This document shows, in pieces, positions 406-43,107 of a stretch of DNA of 64,000 nt. Source of the stretch: Obrimoposthia wandeli (Eukaryota). The position numbers were made by a program, and so were the translations under genes. How positions within the stretch are numbered: the first letter of the stretch is position 1; each line of letters opens with the position of its first letter. A model generated the notes under the pieces. That model was not told where the DNA came from. It saw only the letters and a program-made list of their open reading frames with translations, and made no database searches. The stretch spans positions 124,001 to 188,000 of the forward strand of contig CDROCS010000253.1 in assembly GCA_977020255.1 (NCBI GenBank), in the 5' to 3' direction.

Positions 406-3264
406 CTAATCAATTAAGCGTTTTTTCCAAATGCCTGTAATAACATCTTGTCCTGCTACGTTTTGCCTATCAATTAATTGCCCTGCATTTTGCATCGTTG
501 CTTGATGACCTAAAGCTCTTAATTTTTGATACATATTACTTAGCTGTTGTTGTTCTGCCTTTGTTACTAAGTCCAATTTCAGTAAGCTTTTAAATATACC
601 TAGATTGTCACATACCAGCATCAATTCTCTATGTTGTGTCGCGTGGGCAAGTACTAAAAATTGTGCAAGAAATTCAATATCAACTAACCCCCCTTTCCCC
701 TGTTTAATATCAAAGAGCGATTCAGTTGATTTATCTAAATGACTACGCATTTTTTCCCGCATAGTAATGATATTGCTTTTGAGTTCGATAAATTCTCTTG
801 GTTTAGATAAAACATCGTGTCGAATATCGATAAATTGTTGCTGAAGCTCTTCATTACCAAAAATCATTCGGGCTCTTACTAACGCTTGATGCTCCCATGT
901 CCAAGCATCTTCATGTTGATACTGAGCAAAGGTAGTTAAATGTACTACCAATAAACCGGAGTTCCCTGACGGCCTTAAACGCATATCCAACTCATATAAT
1001 ATGCCGCTATTCATACGGGTGTTAAAAATATGCATAATTCGCTGAGCTAACTTCATATAAAACTGGCTTGCTGGTATTACTTTACTGCCGTCAGCTCTAC
1101 CCGTTGTGTCTTCACTTGCCTCACTATGATGGACGAATACTAAATCTAAGTCTGAGCTATAACCTAACTCTACCCCACCCGTTTTTCCGTAAGCAATAAC
1201 ACCAAAGCCTTTTTCCTTCTCGCCATCTAAGCAAGAAGTCGGAACACCAAAACGTTCACTAACTTGCTGCCATGCAAGGTTTATCACTTCCGAGACAATG
1301 GCCTCAGCCAAAGACGTTAAATGTTCACTGATTTTTGCTACTGGTAATACATCAGCAATTTCAGCGGCAGCAATGCGTAATTGCTGAGATTGTTTAAACT
1401 GACGCAAAGCCTCCATTTGTGCTTCAAGATCTTCTTCTGGAATTCTCAACATGCGCTCACGTAACTCTATCGCATAAGATGACAATTGTGGTGGGTTATG
1501 TAATAACTTGGGGTCAATAAGCTCATCAAGTAAAATAGGGTATTTAGCGATATAATCTGTCACCCAGCTACTTGCCTGGCATAAATGAATAAGTTGCTTT
1601 AACGCGCCTTCATTTTCAAAAAGTAGCTCCAGATAAGCAGTACGTGTCACTATTTTGCTAAAGACTTGTAATACTCTTGCTAAAACTTGTTCTGCCATCT
1701 CATTTTTTTGTAATCGACATAAAAGTAACGGGATTAATTTATCTAAAACCTGACGTCCTCTGTTACCTAAACTGCGTTTGCTAGTATCCTCTCTAAAATC
1801 ATGCAGTATTCGCCATATCTTACCACTTTGCCAACTAAGGGCCTCTTGCTCTAACCAAGCGATAGATTCTTCGTTACTCCAGCGACTATGCCAAAGCGTT
1901 ACCCAGTGTTCGTCTGCCGCTTGATGATTTGGGCTATCTAGTCCAATAAGCAAATCAAACTCTTGGTGAACACCATCCATATGTTTGGCTAATATAGCTA
2001 AAAATTCAGGCCACGTTTCAATGGCAAGTACAGCTAATAATCGCTGCTGATCAAGCTGATTATCGGGTAATGTTTGCGTTTGTTTGTCTGCTAATGCTTG
2101 AATAATATTTTCAACACGTCGTAAGAAACGGTAAGCGTTTTCTAATACTTTTTCGTTCGCTGCATTAATTTCGCCTGACTCAACAAGTTTTGGTAATACA
2201 ATTAATAAACTGCGTTGTTGAAGTTCTTTTACCCGTCCTCCTCGAATCAACTGAAAAACTTGCACGATAAACTCAATTTCACGAATACCGCCAGCGCCAA
2301 GTTTAATATTATTAATGAGCTGTTTACGACGAACTTCTTGGGCAATCATCATTTTCATACGGCGTAAACTATCAATAACACTGAAATCAATATAACGGCG
2401 ATACACAAAAGGTCTGAGCATGCTTGATAGTTGAGTATGGTATTTAGAGTCACCAATAACCCGGGCTTTCAACATCGCATAGCGCTCCCAATCGCGCCCT
2501 TGCTCTTGGTAATAATCTTCCATTGCATTAAATGTCAGCACAAGTGGTCCACTATCACCAAAAGGACGTAATCGCATATCGACACGATAAACAAAACCAT
2601 CACAGGTTACTTGGTGTAATGCAGCAATGAGTTTTTGTGCTAAACGGGTAAAGAATTGTTGATTATCAATACTGCGACGACAACCTATGGTTTCTCCACT
2701 GTCAGGATAAGTAAAAATTAAATCTATATCGGAGGAAAAATTTAACTCCTTACCGCCGAGTTTCCCCATGCCATAGACCAATAAAACCTGACTTTCACCT
2801 TCTTTATTAGTCGGTGTACCCCATTTCTGCTGACAAAAGTCAGTGAGCCATTGTAAGCTCGCTAAAATAAGTTCATCGGCTAATGAGGATAATCTTGCCA
2901 ATGAAATATCTAGGCTAATACTAAACACTAAGTCATCGAGCGCTATCTTAACCATTTGTTGTAAGCGAAAGCGTCTAAGGCTTCGATGCAGCTGAGCTTC
3001 ATCAGTACAAAGCGATAATTTTTCACGTAAAAGACTTTTATAATCCGGCAACGCTTCTTCGTTAGGTACTTTAAAAAGTTCAATTACGATTTCAGGCGCT
3101 TGTAAGGCACTTGTTAAGATGAAATCACTCAAGGTTATCGCTTGTTTAAACGTATCAAGCTGCTCTTGTGTTAATTCATTACAGGCATCTGCATGCTGGT
3201 CAATAAATTGCTGCCAGCTGGTTTTTTGTTGTTCATGTAAAAGGGGAGAAAAAGATAACGTCAC
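406..3264 (-). CDS. glnE: Bifunctional glutamine synthetase adenylyltransferase/deadenylylase
   Basis: 952 aa with two nucleotidyltransferase repeats (GMGKLGGKELNFSSDIDL; AYGKTGGVELGYSSDLDL; DMRLRP twice). Confidence 0.97.
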   Translation of the reverse strand: MTLSFSPLLHEQQKTSWQQFIDQHADACNELTQEQLDTFKQAITLSDFILTSALQAPEIVIELFKVPNEEALPDYKSLLREKLSLCTDEAQLHRSLRRFRLQQMVKIALDDLVFSISLDISLARLSSLADELILASLQWLTDFCQQKWGTPTNKEGESQVLLVYGMGKLGGKELNFSSDIDLIFTYPDSGETIGCRRSIDNQQFFTRLAQKLIAALHQVTCDGFVYRVDMRLRPFGDSGPLVLTFNAMEDYYQEQGRDWERYAMLKARVIGDSKYHTQLSSMLRPFVYRRYIDFSVIDSLRRMKMMIAQEVRRKQLINNIKLGAGGIREIEFIVQVFQLIRGGRVKELQQRSLLIVLPKLVESGEINAANEKVLENAYRFLRRVENIIQALADKQTQTLPDNQLDQQRLLAVLAIETWPEFLAILAKHMDGVHQEFDLLIGLDSPNHQAADEHWVTLWHSRWSNEESIAWLEQEALSWQSGKIWRILHDFREDTSKRSLGNRGRQVLDKLIPLLLCRLQKNEMAEQVLARVLQVFSKIVTRTAYLELLFENEGALKQLIHLCQASSWVTDYIAKYPILLDELIDPKLLHNPPQLSSYAIELRERMLRIPEEDLEAQMEALRQFKQSQQLRIAAAEIADVLPVAKISEHLTSLAEAIVSEVINLAWQQVSERFGVPTSCLDGEKEKGFGVIAYGKTGGVELGYSSDLDLVFVHHSEASEDTTGRADGSKVIPASQFYMKLAQRIMHIFNTRMNSGILYELDMRLRPSGNSGLLVVHLTTFAQYQHEDAWTWEHQALVRARMIFGNEELQQQFIDIRHDVLSKPREFIELKSNIITMREKMRSHLDKSTESLFDIKQGKGGLVDIEFLAQFLVLAHATQHRELMLVCDNLGIFKSLLKLDLVTKAEQQQLSNMYQKLRALGHQATMQNAGQLIDRQNVAGQDVITGIWKKRLID

Positions 3265-3297
3265 AAGAATTCCTTATATTAAGCAAGCGTTGCTATA

Positions 3298-3310
3298 GAC
3301 ATAATATGTC
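3298..3310. promoter_or_regulatory. Palindromic operator GACATAATATGTC (copy 1), between glnE and the lipoprotein-DUF350-speE operon
   Basis: Exact 13-bp match to the core at 7513-7525. Overlaps a TAGACA -35-like hexamer at 3296-3301. Confidence 0.7.
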
Positions 3311-3360
3311 GTTAATGGTATTAATTGACAATTGTCTATGATTTGTCGCTAAAATTAATA

Positions 3361-3622
3361 ATAGCCAAGCCACTTCAAAATGTGAGCTTCAGGGCGTCTG
3401 AGTAAATCAGGATCAAGGCGCATCTTTTATTAATGGTTATTCACTTATAAATAGATGCAACGACGAACATGTTTTACTCAGTCGCCCCCAAAGGGCTGGT
3501 TTAGAAATGTTTTATACTGCATTATTGATTTCGACAAGGGAATAACCATTTTCTTCAATCGATGCTTTGCCTAAAACGTTTCTAATTCCAGCTGAATCCT
3601 CATCTTGAGGTGGTTTGGGTAT
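3361..3622. repeat. MITE/ERIC-like interspersed repeat, ~260 bp (subfamily A')
   Basis: Imperfect terminal inverted repeats (atagccaagccacttcaaaatg / revcomp atacccaaaccacctcaagatg). The core gacaagggaataaccatt..ttcaatc.atgc.ttgcct is shared with copies at 7566, 14796 and 42834. Confidence 0.8.
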
Positions 3623-3654
3623 CACTATTACGATAACATAGCATTTTTAAGGAG

Positions 3655-4644
3655 ATGATGGCAGAAATGCACTTACTAAAAACACCTTTTTTATTGCTCT
3701 TGATCATAATTACTACGCTTAGTTTGTTTGGCTGTGGTGATCCTGTAAAAGAACAAATTGAACAGCAATTACCGATAACTGAACAAAGAGTTACTCAGTT
3801 AGGTACGGCCTTAAATAATGGTCAAATTCGCAATGCCAGCTTAATTAATCAATACGCTGATAAAGTAATGGTTAATAAAGCTAATTTAGCGCCCTTGATT
3901 AATGAACTCCGTAAAGATGCTTCCACTAATGGCCCTATGTATAAAGCGCTATTAGATAGAATTAATACGGCAAAGACTCAGCCACAAATGTTTGAGTCTT
4001 CTCAAGCGCTTTACAATGAATTGCTTAATATTTATCAAGCGGCAGACCCTGTACTTTATTCTGATGCATTGAGCGACCCGCTTAATGTGTTAGCTGATAT
4101 GTCTGATGGTCAACTGCCTCGTATCAATTCTTTATCCAAATCGCAAAGTCAGCAAGCCAACAATGCCCAAGACTTTGGTACAGGTGAGCAATTAATTGGT
4201 AACCCCAGTTATGGTAACTGGCAAACAGGCAGTAATGGCATGTCTTTTTGGGCATGGTATGGCATGTACTCTATGATGGGCGATATGTTTGGTCGTCGTA
4301 CTTCTTATAATGATTGGGGTAGAAGTCGTAATTATAGCTATTACAACGACTACGGCAGAACCCGTTACAGTTCACCTGGGCAATTAAAGAAACAAACATC
4401 CCTTGATACCCGTACTAAAAAATCATTTAGTAATCGCGGGCAAAAGTTTACCAGCCCGTACAGCAAAAACCGAGCGGGTTCATCAAGCTTATCAAGCCAG
4501 AGTAGAACAGCCCAAACCAGTGCTAATCGCTTTCGCACCAATACGGTGAAGAAAAGCAGTTATGCTAATAAATCTAAAAGTAAAAACTCTAGTTTTAGAA
4601 ACTCAAAAACCAATACATCACGCGGCTTTAAACGCGGGAAGTAA
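3655..4644 (+). CDS. Lipoprotein with a Gly/aromatic segment and a long Ser/Arg/Lys-rich C-terminal tail (positional analogue of YjfM/YgiB)
   Basis: Lipobox LSLFG-C after a hydrophobic signal; low-complexity basic tail; first gene of the DUF350-speE operon. Exact start codon uncertain (3655, 3658 or 3667). Confidence 0.75.
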   Translation: MMAEMHLLKTPFLLLLIIITTLSLFGCGDPVKEQIEQQLPITEQRVTQLGTALNNGQIRNASLINQYADKVMVNKANLAPLINELRKDASTNGPMYKALLDRINTAKTQPQMFESSQALYNELLNIYQAADPVLYSDALSDPLNVLADMSDGQLPRINSLSKSQSQQANNAQDFGTGEQLIGNPSYGNWQTGSNGMSFWAWYGMYSMMGDMFGRRTSYNDWGRSRNYSYYNDYGRTRYSSPGQLKKQTSLDTRTKKSFSNRGQKFTSPYSKNRAGSSSLSSQSRTAQTSANRFRTNTVKKSSYANKSKSKNSSFRNSKTNTSRGFKRGK

Positions 4645-4675
4645 TGAATAAATAAAGAATAGGAACGCTAAAATT

Positions 4676-5578
4676 ATGAACTCATTCATCGAACTCGCTG
4701 GTGTTAATCAAGACTTACTCGTTTATTTGGCCATTGATGTCTCTATAGCCATATTATTATTAGGGGCGATGCGATTCCTTTCAGGGCTGAGTGCCAAGGT
4801 AAACAGTACTGAAGAATTAGCAAAAGAAGATAACTTCGCTTTTGGTATCAGTGTTGCAGGTAGCATATTAGCACTAGGTATTGTACTTACTGGCGCTATT
4901 ACCGGCGAAGCAGCAAGTAGCTATGCCATGGAAGCTATTGGCATGCTCGCATACGGCGGTTATGGTTTGATACTTATTAAAGTAGGTCGTATTATCCATG
5001 ATAAAGTAGCACTGCAACGTTTAGATAAAAATGCGCTGATAATAGAGAAAAACTTAACCATTGGTATTATTGATGCCGCTGGTGCTATTGCAACGGCGAT
5101 AGTCATTCGTGCAGTATTATTATGGGTAGATGGACTAGATTTTAGTACATTTATTGCTATTACCAGTGGTTTTATTGTTGCTCAAACAATGTTGGTTCTA
5201 GTGACTCGACTTCGTGAACGACAATATGCTAAAAACAATCAAGAAGACTGCTTACAAGAAGCGTTAAGTAATGGTCAACTTGCTTTAGCCATTCGCTATA
5301 GTGGGCAGGTAATAAGTACGGCTTTAGCGGTAACAGCTGCAAGTCACTTCCTTACTTATAGCCCTGAAACGTTAGTTGTTAATTTACTGGGCTGGTTAAT
5401 TTTTGGTATCGGAATGACCTTACTTGTTGCCCTACTTACTGCAATAGCTAAGCGCATCGTACTTTGGGGAATTGACTTAGTTGAAGAAGTTGATCAACAA
5501 CATAATATCGGTGTTGCTAGTATTGAAATGGCAACCAGTATTGCCATAGCCTTAATATTAACGGCGCTAATGGCTTAA
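4676..5578 (+). CDS. DUF350 (YjfL-like) inner-membrane protein with duplicated domain
   Basis: About 8 hydrophobic segments with repeated 'N.A.GI..AG / NIGVASIE.A..IAIAL' patterns; context of the yjf cluster. Confidence 0.8.
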   Translation: MNSFIELAGVNQDLLVYLAIDVSIAILLLGAMRFLSGLSAKVNSTEELAKEDNFAFGISVAGSILALGIVLTGAITGEAASSYAMEAIGMLAYGGYGLILIKVGRIIHDKVALQRLDKNALIIEKNLTIGIIDAAGAIATAIVIRAVLLWVDGLDFSTFIAITSGFIVAQTMLVLVTRLRERQYAKNNQEDCLQEALSNGQLALAIRYSGQVISTALAVTAASHFLTYSPETLVVNLLGWLIFGIGMTLLVALLTAIAKRIVLWGIDLVEEVDQQHNIGVASIEMATSIAIALILTALMA

Positions 5579-5708
5579 TAGGTTACATATATAAAGTAAA
5601 CTCGCCACCATAGTGCTATCAAGCGCTGGTGGTGAGTATTTCAAAGACTCTCTGACTTCATATTTCATTCCTCTCCCCACTGATTAATACTTATTAACGA
5701 TTAACACT

Positions 5709-7430
5709 ATGTCACAAAATACTTTACCTCAAGACCCTTTACTTCAAAATAAGTCTCACTTGCTCGACGATATTCTACTTATTCTAACAATGGCTGTTTT
5801 AGCTGGTTGTGGTCTGATTTATGAGTACTTGCTATCTCATTACGCCGGTCGAGTGTTAGGCGTGATGGAAAGTACTATCTACACCATGATCGGGTTAATG
5901 ATAGTGTCAATGGGGCTTGGCGCTTTTGCCGCTCGAAAAGTCCGCTGTGCTTTTAATGGTTTTGTCTGGTTAGAGCTTATGATTGCCTTACTAGGTAGCT
6001 CTGCCATTTTGATCATTGGTGGTTTAATCGCTATTACGCAAATATTCCCGCAATTGATTGCCGATATGCTATCACTGCCACCTGATATGAAACCACAAGG
6101 TGGACTCTTCAAACAGTTAAGTTGGCTGGCTTTTAATAGTCCTTACTTTTTCGGGGTTGTTTTAGGCTTTTTTATTGGCATGGAAATTCCGCTTATTGCT
6201 CGCATTCGAGAGAGTATTCATCAGCAGCATCTTGCCAACAATTTAGGTACTATTTATGGTGCAGATTATGTTGGTGCCGGTATTGGTGCGGCAATCTGGG
6301 TAGTTTTTTTACTAAGTATCGATATCAGTAAAGCCGCAGCACTCACCGCAAGTTTAAATCTAATTGCCGGCGCTTTTTTTATCTTACGCTATTGGCAACA
6401 ACTTACTTGGCGAAAAACCTTTGTAGGTTTACATTGTGCATTAGCATTAATTATTATTTTGATGTTTAATTATGGTAATCAATGGCTTAATCAAATGAAT
6501 AGTCTGCTTTACCTTGATAAAGTGGTTCACACCGATAAAACACGCTATCAGCAGTTAACCTTTACCGAACGTCACATGGGTCTTGAGCAAGACAATATAA
6601 TCAATTTCTACCTAAATGGTCGCTTACAGTTTTCATCTATTGATGAACATATTTATCATGATTACCTTGTTGCTCCTGTAATGGCAGGCTCTGCACGACA
6701 TGATAATATATTAATTATTGGCGGCGGTGACGGTTTAGCCTTAAGGGATGTTTTAAAATACAATCCTAAACAGGTAACATTAATCGACTTAGACAGTGAA
6801 CTAATCGATATATTTAAACAACCTAAAGGTCTAGTAAACCCTCGCTTAGCACGTCAAATTTTACAATTGAATAAACAAAGTTTACAGGATAAACGCGTCA
6901 AAATTTACCGTGCCGATGCGTTTATTGCCATTAATGAATTATTAAAAGCACGACAAACATTCGATGCTATTATTGTTGATTTACCAGATCCAAGCCATCC
7001 TGATCTCAATAAACTCTATTCAGTAAATTTTTATGCGCGGCTTAAATTGTTACTGTCGGGGGATGGTTTGATTGCGATTCAATCAACTAGCCCATATCAT
7101 GCTAAAGACTCTTTCATTGCGATTGGTAATACCTTAGCAGCAGCTAAATTTGCTCATGTTGAGCAATATCACGACAACGTGCCCAGCTTTGGTGAATGGG
7201 GTTGGACCATTGCCGCTAAAAATGGCGCTAGCCCATTAACAAGATTAAACAAATTAACTAAGCTTCCGGTAGCGCATCGATGGTTAAATTTAGCTATATT
7301 AAAAGCGGCTTTTATTTTTCCTAATGATTTTTATCAAAATAAAGAGAATATCGGCATTAATATATTGGGCAGTCATACCATTTATCAATTACATCAAAAG
7401 GCTTGGCAAGACCAACAAAACTTGAATTAA
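5709..7430 (+). CDS. speE: Polyamine aminopropyltransferase (spermidine synthase) with an N-terminal multi-TM domain
   Basis: N-terminal ~250 aa hydrophobic; SAM-binding IIGGGDG motif, IIVDLPDP, VPSFGEWGW. Confidence 0.88.
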   Translation: MSQNTLPQDPLLQNKSHLLDDILLILTMAVLAGCGLIYEYLLSHYAGRVLGVMESTIYTMIGLMIVSMGLGAFAARKVRCAFNGFVWLELMIALLGSSAILIIGGLIAITQIFPQLIADMLSLPPDMKPQGGLFKQLSWLAFNSPYFFGVVLGFFIGMEIPLIARIRESIHQQHLANNLGTIYGADYVGAGIGAAIWVVFLLSIDISKAAALTASLNLIAGAFFILRYWQQLTWRKTFVGLHCALALIIILMFNYGNQWLNQMNSLLYLDKVVHTDKTRYQQLTFTERHMGLEQDNIINFYLNGRLQFSSIDEHIYHDYLVAPVMAGSARHDNILIIGGGDGLALRDVLKYNPKQVTLIDLDSELIDIFKQPKGLVNPRLARQILQLNKQSLQDKRVKIYRADAFIAINELLKARQTFDAIIVDLPDPSHPDLNKLYSVNFYARLKLLLSGDGLIAIQSTSPYHAKDSFIAIGNTLAAAKFAHVEQYHDNVPSFGEWGWTIAAKNGASPLTRLNKLTKLPVAHRWLNLAILKAAFIFPNDFYQNKENIGINILGSHTIYQLHQKAWQDQQNLN

Positions 7431-7510
7431 GCTTTACTACTAGGGTTATTACTCAGTAATAGTTCTAAGCATTATTTATAGAATGGTTACAATTAGTTTA
7501 TAAAAACCGC

Positions 7511-7561
7511 TTGACATAATATGTCAAGGTGTTAAATTTAACTCAGACGACATATTATGTC
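7511..7561 (+). promoter_or_regulatory. sigma70-type promoter with two operator copies (TTGACATAATATGTCAA 7511-7527; GACATATTATGTC 7549-7561)
   Basis: TTGACA at 7511-7516, then TG-n-TAAATT (extended -10) at 7530-7538. The 17-bp perfect palindrome covers the -35 and the second copy lies just past the predicted start site. Confidence 0.75.
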
Positions 7562-7565
7562 ATCT

Positions 7566-7834
7566 TATACCAAGTTGATTGAGTTCTTTCCCACTCAGCG
7601 AGAATTAAAAGGTTTATAGGCAAGGCATTGATTGAAGATAATGGTTATTCCCTTGTCAAAATCAATAACGCAGTATCTAAACCTTTTAAACTCGCCCTTT
7701 GGGAGCTTGCTCGATAAGCACTAACATCGTTAAATTTATTGAGTTTAGAGTGACTAAACCTAAAAAAATTTACCTTGTTATTGAACATCGAGCACAGCTC
7801 TGAGTTGGGAAGGAATTTAATCAAATTGGTATTA
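7566..7834. repeat. MITE/ERIC-like interspersed repeat, ~270 bp (subfamily A)
   Basis: Terminal inverted repeats tataccaagttgattgagttctttcccactcag / revcomp taataccaatttgattaaattccttcccaactcag. Colinear by eye with 42834-43102. Confidence 0.85.
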
Positions 7835-7866
7835 TTTTCATCAAAGAAAGGAAGGATAGGAAATAC

Positions 7867-8280
7867 ATGAACATTCATACTATAGCCGATCACTTAAACA
7901 GCTTGGCAGATAATTCAGACACAGGAATGAGCTTTGATTGCCAACCGATATCTGGCGAAGTCGACGTCCTGCAAATTAGCATTTCAGACCGTGAAGAGTT
8001 ACCCATTTTTGTTTCAGTAACCGATGACCAAATTATTTGCATCAGCTACTTATGGGGAACCGAAGAAGTTAAACCTGAATGTATTCATACCATGCATGAG
8101 AGCATGTTAGAAATGAATATCCCTATGCCCTTATCATCATTTTCAAAAATTGGTGATAAATATGTAGTCTTTGGCGCTTTATCTATCAATTCAAGCTTTT
8201 CTGATGTTGAGCATGAGTTAGCGGTATTAAGCAATAATGCCATGGAAGTGATTGATGATATGAGTGATTACTTACTTTAG
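7867..8280 (+). CDS. yjfI: YjfI family (DUF2170) protein, CesT/Tir-chaperone-like
   Basis: 137 aa, acidic; 'LPIFVSVTDDQIICISYLW...MLEMNIPMPLSSF....YVVFGALS' pattern; directly upstream of the PspA homolog. Confidence 0.8.
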   Translation: MNIHTIADHLNSLADNSDTGMSFDCQPISGEVDVLQISISDREELPIFVSVTDDQIICISYLWGTEEVKPECIHTMHESMLEMNIPMPLSSFSKIGDKYVVFGALSINSSFSDVEHELAVLSNNAMEVIDDMSDYLL

Positions 8281-8340
8281 TTAAACAACTAATTAAGCGT
8301 CATTTTGATTACCCCTAATTAGGAATAAGTGGAGTTAATA

Positions 8341-9030
8341 ATGAGTATATTTAAGAAAATAATGACCGCAATTCGTGGCGGCGCATCAGAAGCTGGTGAA
8401 GCAATCATTGATGCGAATGCAACCCGTATTTTTGAACAAGAAATTCGTGATGCTGAAAATCACCTAACCAAAGCAAAACGTGATTTAACCGGTGTTATGG
8501 CTGAGCAAATGTCAGCAAAACGTGAAGTAGATCGCTTAAGCCGTGAAATTACAGAACATGAAGGTTATGTAGCACAAGCGCTTGAAAAAGGTGATGAAAC
8601 ATTAGCACTTGCTGTAGCAGAAAAAATTGCTAACTTAGAAAGTACTTTAGCTGATCAACAACAAGCCCACGATAGTTTCAGTGGTAGTGCTGATCGTTTG
8701 AAAGAGTTAGTTAAGAAAAGTGAACGCCAAGTCGCGGAGCATAAACGTCAACTTTCTATGGTTAAAACGACTGAAAGTGTACAAAAAGCAACGTCAGCAA
8801 TTACCGATAATTTTTCATCAAGCAATTCTAAGTTATTAAGTGCGAAAGATTCTTTAGAACGCATTAAAGCTAAGCAACAAAAGTTCGATGATAAAATGAA
8901 AGCGGGTGAGTTACTTGAATCTGAAAACTCTGACTCATCATTACAAGCGCAATTAAAAGCCGCCGGTATTGGTTCACAAGACAATAGCGCTAATTCAGTA
9001 TTAGAGCGTTTAAAAGCTAAACAAAAGTAA
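8341..9030 (+). CDS. pspA: PspA/IM30 family protein (YjfJ-like)
   Basis: MSIFKKIMTAIRGGASEAGEAIID.NATRIFEQEIRDAE; long coiled coil. GGAG RBS favours ATG 8341 over GTG 8329. Confidence 0.92.
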   Translation: MSIFKKIMTAIRGGASEAGEAIIDANATRIFEQEIRDAENHLTKAKRDLTGVMAEQMSAKREVDRLSREITEHEGYVAQALEKGDETLALAVAEKIANLESTLADQQQAHDSFSGSADRLKELVKKSERQVAEHKRQLSMVKTTESVQKATSAITDNFSSSNSKLLSAKDSLERIKAKQQKFDDKMKAGELLESENSDSSLQAQLKAAGIGSQDNSANSVLERLKAKQK

Positions 9031-9038
9031 TATGCCTT

Positions 9039-9072
9039 AAGCCAGTTGAATTATTTAACTGGCTTTACTTTT
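9039..9072 (+). terminator. Intrinsic terminator-like hairpin after pspA, inside the operon
   Basis: aagccagttgaa-ttat-ttaactggctt followed by tactttt. Confidence 0.65.
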
Positions 9073-9164
9073 AACAATTTTTAAAATAATACCGTATCTG
9101 AGCCTGATTTATTCACTCTATAGTATGGTATTAAATAAGCATCCATCCTACTTCAGGTAACCCT

Positions 9165-9806
9165 ATGAGCTTTTTTAAAAAGATATTTAATAAATCATCT
9201 AACGAACCAAGAAAATTAACACAAGTTAATCAATTATTGGCTGATGATATTATTGTTTTGACCGATAGTTTTGCTCTACCTGAATCATTACGTGGACAAG
9301 AGTTTCAAGTAAAGTCCGTTAATAGCTATGAATTTGAAGATAAAGTACAAACCGAATGGGCTTTAATGGGTTCTAACGCGCTAGAAATATTTTTATCACT
9401 GGAAGAAGATGATATTTCCGAGCTGAAATTATCATTAAAAATTCAGCACGAAGATGTCGAAACCTTGTTTGACTTAGATAATTTTTCCGAAATTTTTGAT
9501 GAGCCAGGAAACGCTTTTTTAGAGAAAAAAGCTGACTCCAAAATCACCACGATGTGGAGCAGCGAGCAATATCAACAAAGCGTATTTGCTAAGGTCGGTT
9601 TTTTTCACCGCAAAGATCACCGTAGTGAGAGCCTGTCAGCTTATGAAGGAAAAGATAGCGGCGAGCAATTTGAATTATATAGCTTATATAATGAAGACCA
9701 GAGTAAAGGTATTGATGTTGAAGTATGGCAAGATGGCGATACTGAAGTGTGCTTAACTCTATTTAGGCCCCTTAGTGATATAATTGATATGTATCCAGCA
9801 AGTTAG
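9165..9806 (+). CDS. yjfK: YjfK family (DUF2491-like) protein
   Basis: 213 aa, acidic, starting MSFFKKIF; position after the PspA homolog matches the yjfIJK order. Confidence 0.65.
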   Translation: MSFFKKIFNKSSNEPRKLTQVNQLLADDIIVLTDSFALPESLRGQEFQVKSVNSYEFEDKVQTEWALMGSNALEIFLSLEEDDISELKLSLKIQHEDVETLFDLDNFSEIFDEPGNAFLEKKADSKITTMWSSEQYQQSVFAKVGFFHRKDHRSESLSAYEGKDSGEQFELYSLYNEDQSKGIDVEVWQDGDTEVCLTLFRPLSDIIDMYPAS

Positions 9807-9856
9807 AAAAAAATTATTCACCAAAGAGTTTGGAAACTACTAATTCGGAAACGACA

Positions 9857-10198
9857 ATGGCGAGAAAAATCCCCGATAAATGGCAGTCCTCAGTTAAAGC
9901 GATAAAAGCTGTGCAGGTCGCTTTTGATATGGACGAAAAGATCCAACTGTCTATTCGTAAACAGGCACTTGATGCAGGCTTAAGTCCTTCAGATCAAATT
10001 CGTGATATTTTAGGCTTACCAATCAATAAAAGACCCAAGCGACCACGCTTAACTGTGAGTTTGGCTCCCAGTGACTATCAACTTCTTGCTGAGAAATATC
10101 AACTACCAGCCGAAGATCAACTAGAAATTAAGAAGAAACTTATGGATGATTTAATCACTCATATTAATTCGGGCAATAGCGACCAAGATGAACAGTGA
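9857..10198 (+). CDS. Putative tandem ribbon-helix-helix DNA-binding protein
   Basis: VQVAFDM-DEKIQLSIRKQALDAG-LSPSDQIRDILG fits the beta/helixA/G-x-S/helixB RHH pattern; second RHH-like unit RLTVSL-APSDYQLLAEKY. ATG 9857 preferred over TTG 9830. Confidence 0.65.
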   Translation: MARKIPDKWQSSVKAIKAVQVAFDMDEKIQLSIRKQALDAGLSPSDQIRDILGLPINKRPKRPRLTVSLAPSDYQLLAEKYQLPAEDQLEIKKKLMDDLITHINSGNSDQDEQ

Positions 10199-10287
10199 TA
10201 TCAACATATAACGACTTTGTTAAAGTTTTTTTTTGTGCCATACTGGAATGAGAAAAAACAAATAATAACTTCACTTGGGATATCCTT

Positions 10288-10545
10288 ATGTTAAAAAAAA
10301 TGACCGCAGTAGCTCTAGCCTTAACGCTATCGGCTTGTGCTAACACTGATGCACTTGATGCAAATATCACCTCATTAACCAGTAAAGTTGATGCTTTATC
10401 AGCCCAAGTTGCTGATTTAGAAACACAGCAACAATCTGTATCAGCTGATGCTAAAGCAGCAAAATCAGCAGCAGAGCAAGCAGCAACAGACGCTAAAGCA
10501 GCAAATGAGCGTATTAATAACGTTGTAGCTTCATATAAAAAATAA
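10288..10545 (+). CDS. lpp: Major outer-membrane lipoprotein (Lpp/OprI alanine-zipper family)
   Basis: Lipobox LSA-C, heptad Ala-rich coiled coil, C-terminal SYKK. Confidence 0.9.
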   Translation: MLKKMTAVALALTLSACANTDALDANITSLTSKVDALSAQVADLETQQQSVSADAKAAKSAAEQAATDAKAANERINNVVASYKK

Positions 10546-10608
10546 TCATTATTGCTAGCTTAATTAGTAATTTAATTAGTAATAGATAACAAAAAAGCAC
10601 CTTTAGGT

Positions 10609-12032
10609 TAATGCCGATCAGTTAAGCAATTTATAGCTTGATTATTTTGCTAATGAGATCAAAATCCAGTGATTGATATCACTGGATTTTTTTATGCAAC
10701 TTTCTACCGCACTTTCCTTAGTTAACTCAAATAATATCACTGAATTTAAAAGCCTTACCGATATTTTATCACCCGAAATTATCGAACAAGGGTTAAATAC
10801 ACACGGTATTGCAACCATTAGAAAAAGAAAACTACCCATGGAAAGTATGATTTGGGCTGTTATTGGTATGGCTTTATTCCGTAATTTTTCTATGCGTCAA
10901 TTACTCAATCAATTAGATATAATTCTGCCTAATGGTACGCCTTTTGTTGCTCCAAGTGCCGTAACTCAAGCGAGAAAAAAGCTTGGAAGCGAAGTGATTA
11001 AAACCATTTTCGAACAAACCCAATTACAATGGAATGAAAAATCTGAACACCCACATTGGTGCGGTTTAAACCTGTATGGCGTTGATGGCGTAGTATGGAG
11101 AACGCCTGATACAAAAGAAAATAGTGATGTTTTCTCTAGAGCAAGTAACAAAAAAGCTATTGGTGCTTATCCACAAGTAAGAATGGTTTGCCAAATGGAG
11201 CTAACAAGCCATATGCTCATTAATAGTGCCTTCGATAGTTACGATGTCAATGAAATGAAACTTGCTGAAAATTTAATTGCTACGACACATGATAACAGTT
11301 TAACTATTTTTGACCGTGGTTTTTATTCATTGGGTTTATTAAATCGTTGGCATAATACAGGTGAAATGAGGCACTGGCTTATCCCTTTAAAAAAGAATAC
11401 TCAGTATAAAGTTATTCGAAAAATGGGTAATAAAGATTATTTAGTCAAAATCGAAACGACACCACAGTCTAAAAAGAAATTTGATGATTTAGGTCATTCA
11501 GTAATCGCTAGATTAGTAACAAGGACGGTTAAAGGCAAAGAAGTAGAAATATTAACGTCAATGGTCGACCCAATGCGATTTCCTAAAGGCGATATTGTTG
11601 ATTTATATTCACATCGTTGGGAGATAGAGCTTGGCTTTCGAGAAATGAAACAATACATGTTAGACAGCAGATTTACGCTTAGAAGTAATCAACCAGACCT
11701 TATAAAACAGGAGTTATGGGGAATTTTATTAGCCTATAACTTAATTCGTTACCAGATGGTTTTAATGGCAAAGTCGCTGAAAAACATCCATCCAAATCAA
11801 CTTAGTTTCCATGGTGCATCACTTCATATAATTCATCATTTAACTCAGTTACCCTTCATATCACCAGGTAATATTCCCAAGTTTGTAATGGATATGACTA
11901 AAGCGGCAGAGCAATTTATCTTGCCATCGAGAAGAGAGAGGAAATACCCTCGAGCATTAAAGTGCTCTAAAAATAGATACCCGGTCAAAAAAGCAGTAAA
12001 AAAATGCCACTCACCTTAAGTGAACGGCATTA
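10609..12032 (+). mobile_element. IS4-family insertion sequence, 1424 bp, structurally complete
   Basis: 18-bp IRs TAATGCCGATCAGTTAAG (10609-10626) and revcomp TAATGCCGTTCACTTAAG (12015-12032), 2 mismatches. 10-bp direct repeats ACCTTTAGGT at 10599-10608 and 12033-12042. Confidence 0.96.
10673..12019 (+). CDS. IS4-family DDE transposase
   Basis: [26 protein letters not shown] (DDE / YREK signature). The stop codon lies inside the right IR. Alternative ATG at 10694. Confidence 0.95.
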
Positions 12033-14795: not shown

Positions 14796-15165
14796 ATACC
14801 AAACAGATTAATTTATTGGTCAACTTAGAGCTACATTAGCGAGCTTAAAACAAGCAAAATGAGTTAAACATAGTTATTCTATATTTCATTAATTTTGTGC
14901 TGTTATCAGTTTGCTAATGAGCTCCCAAAGGGCGAGTACCTAATAAAAGGTAAAGGCTTATATACTGCGTTATTAATTTTGAGAAGGACGCTGCATGGAT
15001 GCCGCTTATTAGAGAATCCAGACGGTACAGGAAGTACCTTATTAGATAATGCAAGAGCAATTATCCTGAGCACATTCTCCTGAATAACCATTCTCTACAA
15101 TCAATGCCTTGCCTCTAAGGATTTTAACTCTCGCTAAGTGATCAATAAATTAGTCCGATTGGTAT
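14796..15165. repeat. MITE/ERIC-like repeat (subfamily A, reverse orientation) carrying a nested 94-bp insertion at 14988-15081
   Basis: TIRs ataccaaacagattaatttattggtcaacttag / revcomp ataccaatcggactaatttattgatcacttag. The core aagg|gaataacc is interrupted by acgctgcatggatg...cacattctcct. Confidence 0.85.
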
Positions 15166-42833: not shown

Positions 42834-43102
42834 TAATACCAAGTCTATTAAGTTATTTCCCGCTCAGCGAGAATTAAAAAGCTTAGAGGCAAGGCTTTAA
42901 TTAAAGATAATGGTTATTCCCTTATCAAAATAAATAACGCAGCATATAAGCCTTTTAAGCTCACCCTTCGGGAGCTTATTAGCAAACTGATAACATCGCA
43001 AAATTGGTGAAATATAGAATAACTATATTTAATCAATTTCACTTGTTCTAAGCTCGCTAATAGTAGCTCTGAGCTGGGAATAAATTTAATAAAATTGGTA
43101 TA
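42834..43102. repeat. MITE/ERIC-like repeat (subfamily A) between nirH and nirJ
   Basis: taataccaagtctattaagttatttcccgctcagcgag...ctctgagctgggaataaatttaataaaattggtata; colinear with 7566-7834. Confidence 0.85.
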
Positions 43103-43107
43103 ATATT

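Follow-up and report, generated by a model that had tools for sequence, protein, structure and literature searches.

A candidate ribbon-helix-helix autorepressor and its conserved 13-bp palindrome at two operons of a YjfJ-type PspA locus

What controls the two operons of a PspA-type locus that carries no obvious counterpart of the classical PspF circuit? The question is raised by a 64,000-nucleotide stretch of DNA deposited under Obrimoposthia wandeli (GenBank assembly GCA_977020255.1, contig CDROCS010000253.1, positions 124,001 to 188,000 of the forward strand; this whole stretch is the window hereafter, and positions are counted from its first letter), in which a lipoprotein-DUF350-SpeE operon is followed by a yjfI-pspA-yjfK operon whose last gene (9857-10198, plus strand, ATG at 9857) encodes a protein of 113 residues with homologues that point to Colwellia. 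An earlier note, made from the sequence alone, had proposed that a short palindrome found at both promoters is the operator of this protein, which it took for a tandem ribbon-helix-helix (RHH) repressor. Our analysis favours this proposal in that the 113-aa protein would be an RHH autorepressor and the 13-bp palindrome its operator at both operons; we infer binding and repression from sequence, and we put the probability of this reading at roughly three in four.

A search of the whole window with the query GACATA-N-TATGTC, in which the centre base was left free, returned GACATA(A/T)TATGTC without mismatch at 3298-3310, 7513-7525 and 7549-7561, and no fourth site in the 64 kb at up to one mismatch. 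Two further matches with two mismatches (1549 and 27257) are at chance level, given that 1.9 are expected at up to two mismatches, and the observed site total was reached in none of 100 shuffles of the window. The first site (3298-3310) is a single copy ahead of the lipoprotein-DUF350-SpeE operon, while the other two belong to the yjfI operon, where O1 (7513-7525) overlaps the -35 hexamer and O2 (7549-7561) lies just past the predicted start point. O1 is embedded in the perfect 17-bp palindrome TTGACATAATATGTCAA at 7511-7527, the symmetry of which reaches 19 bp (7510-7528). As such, the exact search agrees with the earlier description of three copies, of no other copy in the window and of a 17-bp extension over a -35 hexamer, and lengthens the last of these.

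Both promoters are predicted from sequence to be of the sigma-70 type, and in both of them the operator is part of the promoter itself, as TT or TA together with the GACA of the operator forms the -35 element and an extended -10 follows. At the yjfI operon, the promoter predicted on the plus strand (7511-7538; 10/12 in the promoter scan, with TG) consists of the -35 TTGACA at 7511-7516, a TG at 7530-7531 and the -10 TAAATT at 7533-7538, with a 16-nt spacer, and O2 begins about 4 nt past the predicted start point, a layout that is conserved in relatives and in line with its first description as lying just beyond the start site. The lipoprotein operon has a predicted plus-strand promoter at 3296-3324, recognised from the sequence and its relatives, with the -35 TAGACA at 3296-3301 overlapping the operator, a TG at 3316-3317, the -10 TATTAA at 3319-3324 and a 17-nt spacer. 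No sigma-54 -24/-12 element (TGGCAC-N5-TTGC, up to two mismatches) was detected in the intergenic regions 3265-3654 and 7431-7866, and open reading frames and family searches revealed no gene for an AAA+ activator among the genes of 3296-10198. The earlier expectation of sigma-70 rather than sigma-54 control is therefore supported by -35 and extended -10 elements fused to the operator as well as by the absence of -24/-12 elements. Since the operators overlap the -35, the -10 or the start point, the layout is that of a repressor.

This arrangement is retained across the Colwelliaceae. A protein-guided scan of species-representative genomes, using a 14-sequence alignment, yielded 80 loci from Colwellia, Cognaticolwellia, Pseudocolwellia, Thalassotalea, Thalassomonas and other Alteromonadaceae, with GlnE identity down to about 55%. 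Two exact copies of the palindrome are located upstream of yjfI in 78 of 79 loci and hence at all 78 promoters that can be read, the promoter of the 79th (L043, about 8000-8120) being an uninformative run of N. Among the 79 loci with a lipoprotein gene, the position that corresponds to 3298-3310 holds an exact copy in 70, a copy with one or two mismatches in six and none in three; the last three, from Thalassotalea litorea and T. mangrovi, lack SpeE and encode a lipoprotein of another kind. Altogether 226 exact sites were counted in the 80 loci (1.51 Mb), all of them at the two promoters; no exact copy was found elsewhere in the 1.51 Mb, where about 0.1 is estimated by chance from base composition. 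The conserved footprint at the yjfI promoter comprises TTGACATAWTATGTC, four variable bases, rTG-n-TAAATT, about ten variable bases and GACATAWTATGTC, with a start-to-start spacing of O1 and O2 of 34-37 bp (mode 36), whereas that at the lipoprotein promoter comprises TAGACATAWTATGTC, four variable bases and rTG-n-TATTAAT. The flanks drift and the 13 bp stay invariant, except that the central base alone flips between A and T, and such a flip between invariant arms is the expectation for symmetric recognition. Thus, both the conservation of the motif in orthologous promoters and the idea that one motif ties the two operons together hold across this family.

The operator also accompanies the RHH gene in distant bacteria. 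Two abutting exact copies precede a DUF2170-PspA-RHH operon in L081 (GC 0.66), whose RHH protein is 51% identical to that of the window, and an operon of the same type in L207, an NCBI genome with a GC content of 0.59 and a protein of 35% identity, while two tandem copies of the right half of the operator are present in L082 (44% identity); the contigs of three further distant homologues are too short to show promoters. Moreover, a metagenome scan that used the DNA pattern alone, namely two palindromes 0-30 bp apart, found at least 120 loci, with far fewer than one estimated by chance. Among the 120 loci listed, 95 adjoin yjfI, and the RHH gene lies in the operon in all 52 of these that extend at least 2.5 kb downstream, the other 43 contigs ending too early to show it. 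These 52 informative operons span GC 0.34-0.60 and vary in composition, with or without a DUF4178 gene, with a rhomboid gene or with lipoprotein-DUF350 downstream, and it is the RHH gene that is constant. In one locus (L100, GC 0.52), the same promoter design with both operators drives an RHH-rhomboid pair, with neither yjfI nor pspA in its 6.5-kb stretch. Across the listed loci, three promoter layouts with site spacings of 15, 17-18 and 27-40 bp can be distinguished, and in every one of them TT plus the operator makes a TTGACA -35, while the partner site either lies upstream or overlaps the -10 or the start point. The yjfIJKLMC operons of E. coli K-12 and Salmonella have neither the RHH gene nor the motif. 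The co-occurrence of the motif with orthologues of the 9857-10198 gene, which had been named as a check on the proposal, is hence seen in all informative loci and down to 35% protein identity.

The 113-aa protein appears to consist of an RHH unit 1 (residues 17-54 approximately), a basic linker and an RHH-like unit 2 (about residues 62-105). An exhaustive search gathered a family of 99 representatives at 50% identity, and their alignment reveals two halves that resemble each other, with a basic P-x-R-P-R linker in between and with Q20, F23, R49, L54, R62, R64 and L77 nearly invariant; these residues, which map to the two predicted strands and to the beginning of helix B, show 97-100% conservation among the 170 unique sequences of all loci. 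Both candidate strands alternate between polar and hydrophobic residues, and Q20 on the one and R62, R64 and S68 on the other are nearly invariant. The AlphaFold2 model (mean predicted local distance difference test score, pLDDT, 89.6) contains helices at 27-39, 44-51, 71-81 and 88-111 after two extended segments, so that unit 1 is an extended segment followed by helices 27-39 and 44-51. Foldseek aligned unit 1 to NikA, CopG, Arc, the RHH domain of PutA, FitA, MazE and CopA over 36-38 residues at a root-mean-square deviation of 0.7-1.5 Å and probabilities of 0.7-0.93. Family matches among 58 homologues were NikA-like in six, FitA-like_RHH in three, RHH_1 in three and RHH_10 in two (best E 7.7e-6), and the family profile gave weak matches in the PDB to NikA, AvtR and FitA (E 0.16-1), all within unit 1. 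The turn G41-L-S43-P-S45 ahead of helix B of unit 1 is conserved in the family, and a G-L-S-P-S loop at this point is a typical feature of RHH proteins; the equivalent position of unit 2 is not occupied by Gly. On the basis of the predicted structure, unit 1 is convincingly an RHH fold, and unit 2, modelled alone as an extended segment and two helices (pLDDT 84.7), is by its sequence pattern plausibly RHH-like. No toxin adjoins the gene, which has a DUF4178-like gene upstream and lpp downstream and thereby lacks the pairing that defines a type II antitoxin; in other lineages its neighbours are PspA, rhomboid or yqiJ-like genes.

Several observations weigh against an RHH autorepressor acting at this palindrome. 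The window protein itself matches no curated RHH family in Pfam or NCBIfam, and the Foldseek E-values for unit 1 are above 0.5, which is due to the mere 36-38 residues that align. According to DSSP, the full-length monomer model shows no paired β-ribbon. The Foldseek list for unit 2 includes CopG, Arc, MazE, TacA and AtaR only at probabilities below 0.1 and root-mean-square deviations of 6-7 Å, and an hhalign comparison places the two units in register with a weak score (E 0.0022, probability 13%). The claim of two RHH-like units, and the fold prediction by which it was to be checked, therefore hold for unit 1, with RHH topology in the model, Foldseek matches and family matches of homologues, and are not carried over to unit 2, for which the matches are of low probability, or to a paired ribbon. 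As for the genomes, the 80 Colwelliaceae loci were picked via the RHH gene and consequently test conservation, not co-occurrence, and the control loci without an RHH gene come from a single lineage, the Enterobacteriaceae, as a search for homologues of E. coli YjfI recovered Escherichia, Citrobacter and Enterobacter alone and the plasmid collection returned one Salmonella segment.

A further feature of the window that bears on the palindromes is a dispersed repeat resembling a miniature inverted-repeat transposable element (MITE). The window operators are situated about 300-345 bp from the start codons, whereas in relatives other than L005 O2 is 19-76 bp from yjfI and the single site mostly 28-100 bp from the lipoprotein gene, and the long distances arise because the MITE-like repeat has inserted in both leaders. 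Alignments and blastn place a copy of about 290 bp at 7563-7852 (plus strand) in the gap between O2 and yjfI, bounded by terminal inverted repeats of about 38 nt (ATACCAAGTTGATT... and ...AATTGGTAT), and a diverged minus-strand copy at 3355-3625 (outer limits approximate) in the lipoprotein leader, whose core at 3484-3595 is a 112-nt inverted match to 7595-7706 with 81% identity. A third copy, 77% identical by alignment, is found at 42836-43107 (plus strand) and a remnant detected by blastn at about 14920-15140 (minus strand); in other Colwelliaceae, blastn locates copies scattered at unrelated places; the insertion in the yjfI leader is shared by L005 only, and the copy in the lipoprotein leader is missing from most relatives. 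The 112-nt block had also been considered as a shared leader or small open reading frame, which was rejected in view of its inverted orientation relative to the downstream genes, its terminal inverted repeats and the copies at 42836 and 14920. Likewise, an RNA motif was rejected as the explanation of a shared leader block of about 110 nt, since an Rfam scan of 3000-10700 at E up to 1 gave two chance matches and the block is the dispersed repeat.

Could the palindromes then be ends or by-products of the repeat instead of regulatory sites? Each operator region in the window adjoins a copy, and O2 stops a few bases before the terminal inverted repeat; however, the third copy at 42836-43107 has no palindrome beside it, and therefore the palindromes do not belong to the repeat. 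In addition, the 3298 site stands on the opposite side of its repeat compared with the 7549 site, and 76 of the 78 readable relatives have the palindromes close to yjfI with no such insertion, so that we regard a transposon origin as having a negligible chance of being correct. That the palindrome is bound by another, unlinked factor instead of the 113-aa protein is a more serious alternative, albeit an improbable one. It would fit with the lack of any match of the window protein to curated DNA-binding families and with the roughly 25 of the 120 listed metagenome loci in which an operator pair occurs with no RHH gene in the stretch, yet the latter is also expected of a regulon. The RHH gene is, however, present in every informative listed operon and is the sole gene common to all variants, including L100; the operator stays invariant alongside invariant strand residues down to 35% identity, and E. 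coli and Salmonella lack gene and motif together.

A comparably slim likelihood is given to a protein that binds the palindrome as an activator, as a dual regulator or as a co-repressor in need of YjfI or PspA. In P. aeruginosa, the other Bac proteins increase when BacA, the YjfI homologue, is lost, and BacA is similar to the partner-switching chaperone ExsC (PMC10948618); it is thus conceivable that YjfI assists in control, and the 113-aa protein has no sensor domain of its own. Nevertheless, the operators overlap the -35, the -10 or the start point in every layout, which is typical of repression and not of activation, and L100 keeps the layout with no yjfI or pspA next to it.

We thus return to the 113-aa protein as an RHH autorepressor and propose the following working model. 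The repressor on O1, over the -35, and on O2, at the start point, would shut off the yjfI-pspA-yjfK-RHH operon, and on the single copy that overlaps the -35 it would shut off the lipoprotein-DUF350-SpeE operon, in both cases by excluding RNA polymerase from the promoter. As the RHH gene is the last of the yjfI operon, negative autoregulation would result. Membrane stress is envisaged to relieve binding, which would turn on both operons together. Probably two molecules would bind each palindrome, one per GACAT half-site; Arc and CopG tetramers bind operators of similar size likewise, and two (pseudo)dimers per operator of about 13-21 bp are the usual mode of RHH proteins. The major groove might be read by a ribbon to which one strand contributes Q20 and the other R62, R64 and S68, while R49, where helix B begins, would contact the backbone, and a docking site may be provided by the conserved N-terminal segment that includes W9. 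Here we speculate, with low confidence, that induction could occur by titration of the repressor through YjfI or PspA; the suggestion derives from the lack of a sensor domain in the protein and from BacA, which resembles the partner-switching protein ExsC and acts negatively on its own operon.

If the operator marks a regulon, its reach might extend past the two operons that bear the site in the window and in the 80 related loci. In L166 and L182, the operator pair occurs twice per contig, once at yjfI-pspA-RHH and once (L166 3390-3421; L182 7095-7122) ahead of an operon encoding a YqiJ-like membrane protein (E 0.002 to E. coli YqiJ), a flotillin (E 4e-35 to E. coli YqiK) and an AAA+ protein of 1785 residues; the flotillin/YqiJ set is the other PspA-linked module of Ravi et al. 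(PMC11237479). A Peptidase_M50B-like gene was observed between the RHH gene and the second promoter of L182. Other genes that follow an operator pair among the metagenome loci listed encode a short YidC-like insertase (five independent loci), a Band-7 protein (two loci), small membrane proteins (two or three loci) and, with a single locus apiece, NhaA, an S10 peptidase and a carbonic anhydrase. The membership of YidC-like, Band-7 and other such genes, seen in metagenome contigs only, is a lead and not a finding. A gene for a rhomboid-family intramembrane protease follows the RHH gene in L100 (3764-4339), L101, L142, L138, L151, L193 and L198, and could be part of a signalling route. TelA (L140) was discarded as a target, the sites being beyond its 3' end, and six loci (L102, L125, L134, L136, L146 and L155) were set aside as unrelated or chance repeats. 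A far-reaching extension would have the protein act as master repressor of a membrane-repair regulon that spans several operons, is portable between bacteria and is linked by the one invariant 13-bp operator (YjfI-PspA; DUF350-lipoprotein-SpeE; flotillin/YqiJ/AAA+; Band-7; short YidC-like; possibly rhomboid and NhaA). The protein would then sense membrane damage not through a ligand but through partner switching, either with YjfI, which is CesT/ExsC-like, or with PspA. We consider this extension rather unlikely as it stands; if true, it would represent a repressor-based counterpart of the PspA-PspF logic.

How does the proposed circuit compare with known systems? Similar to Arc, Mnt, CopG and MetJ, the candidate is a small strand-helix-helix protein that would act on a short palindromic operator over promoter elements, with its gene in the controlled operon. 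It differs from them in that it has two units per chain and matches neither curated RHH families nor solved structures significantly by sequence, in that its candidate targets are chromosomal membrane-stress operons and not phage, plasmid or methionine genes, and in that the operator remains unchanged over very large phylogenetic distances. TraY of the F plasmid and VirC2 are natural single-chain tandem RHH proteins, with which the candidate would share two strand-helix-helix repeats per chain that could form an intramolecular ribbon; in contrast, no sequence relation to them is detectable, neither is among the top 50 Foldseek hits, and the monomer model lacks such a ribbon. In enterobacteria, the psp operon is driven by the activator PspF from a sigma-54 promoter, with PspA acting as anti-activator. 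A PspA-family effector is common to both systems, as would be dedicated control and feedback through a protein encoded at the locus, whereas the present locus has predicted sigma-70 promoters, no -24/-12 element in its intergenic regions, no enhancer-binding protein and, as proposed, a promoter-occluding repressor, and its PspA is of the YjfJ type and paired with YjfI.

Closer relatives by gene content are the yjfIJKLMC operon of E. coli and the bacA-F operon of P. aeruginosa (PA3732 cluster), with which the locus shares the YjfI-PspA core as well as DUF350, a lipoprotein and a polyamine enzyme; the two operons of the window together carry the functions of the single E. coli operon. The regulator of E. 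coli yjfIJKL is not known (PMC12492005), and the P. aeruginosa bac operon was proposed to be sigma-54 dependent (PMC10948618). From gene neighbourhoods, Ravi et al. 2024 (PMC11237479) described CesT/Tir-PspA operons with seven-transmembrane (7TM) SpeE, DUF350, lipoprotein, DUF4178 and sometimes RHH genes, that is, the same gene set as in the window, with an RHH gene at the operon end already noted. That paper contains no operator, promoter or regulon, while in the window the genes are split into two operons joined by a shared operator. Our literature search found the motif string in no bacterial paper and no paper on such a regulator. The view that the regulator had not been described is consequently upheld for operator, promoters and regulon in the literature found, and requires amendment for the RHH gene itself, whose place at the operon end is on record in PMC11237479. 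In kind, the system would be a classical RHH autorepressor; what would be new, judging from sequence comparison, are the family, the exact operator, the link to a YjfJ-type PspA and the reach over several operons.

YjfJ-type PspA systems are widespread; for E. coli, a link with heat tolerance has been reported (PMC12492005), and for P. aeruginosa one with biofilm formation and virulence (PMC10948618, PMC2587700). For these systems, the present analysis offers a candidate regulator, an exact operator and promoter maps. The 13-mer may further serve as a sequence tag by which to recognise, in uncultured bacteria, genes of membrane homeostasis that are regulated together (flotillin, Band-7, YidC-like, SpeE-DUF350), and hence as a route to the joint role of such uncharacterised proteins. 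It is unusual for a 13-bp operator to be conserved almost absolutely in genomes that range from 34% to 66% GC, and the pair could become a good model of protein-DNA co-conservation.

With regard to the genes of the two operons, open reading frames, translations and family searches match the content first described. The first plus-strand operon starts with a lipoprotein (3655-4644; signal peptide with Cys, no Pfam match) that is the counterpart of the 'novel lipoprotein' reported for this operon type in PMC11237479, followed by a membrane protein with two DUF350 (YjfL-type) domains (4676-5578; Pfam PF03994, E 6.7e-32, two stretches) and a membrane-anchored, SpeE-like polyamine aminopropyltransferase (5709-7430; NCBIfam PRK03612, 606 bits; Pfam Spermine_synth). 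The second, also on the plus strand, comprises yjfI (DUF2170; 7867-8280; Pfam PF09938, E 5.5e-39), which PMC11237479 places in the CesT/Tir-like chaperone family, a PspA/IM30-family gene of the YjfJ type (8329-9030; Pfam PF04012, E 3.3e-39), a gene at the YjfK position with a weak DUF4178 match (9165-9806; Pfam PF13785, E 6e-4, below the cut-off) and the RHH gene. The YjfK-position gene is missing in eight of the 52 RHH-containing metagenome operons listed and in L074-L076, and on this comparison is dispensable for the putative circuit. In the gap between pspA and the DUF4178 gene, a terminator scan found a plus-strand hairpin at 9039-9065 with a 12-pair stem and a weak T-tract, which may be a partial terminator or attenuator that lowers the distal genes, including the repressor, relative to PspA; in the proposed circuit, it may thereby hold repressor output below that of the effector.

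On the other side of the 3298 site, glnE runs on the minus strand from its 5' end at 3264. The earlier note had placed the site upstream of the lipoprotein operon and next to the divergent glnE; the former stands, and glnE was rejected as its main target, given that the distance from site to glnE ranges from 31 to 350 bp among relatives while the geometry toward the lipoprotein gene is fixed, which assigns the site to the lipoprotein promoter. In the window, only 34 bp separate the operator from the start codon of glnE, and the promoter scan reported a weak minus-strand promoter toward glnE (TTGTCA 3331-3326, CATATT 3308-3303) with its -10 inside the operator. In the C. psychrerythraea clade, glnE might thus be affected by the same repressor, a layout that is unconserved in more distant relatives.

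Just 3' of the -10 of the lipoprotein promoter lies a perfect 10-bp palindrome, GACAATTGTC, at 3327-3336, whose outer half-sites are GACA and TGTC as in the operator but with two central bases compared with five. It is kept only in the closest Colwellia relatives, several of which carry GACACTTGTC, and it may represent a second site in degenerate form or be recognised by a different factor. At the far end of the locus, lpp (10288-10545) lies 3' of the RHH gene, and an IS4-family transposase gene (10673-12019; NCBIfam transpos_IS4_1, E 1.8e-84) is located just 3' of lpp.

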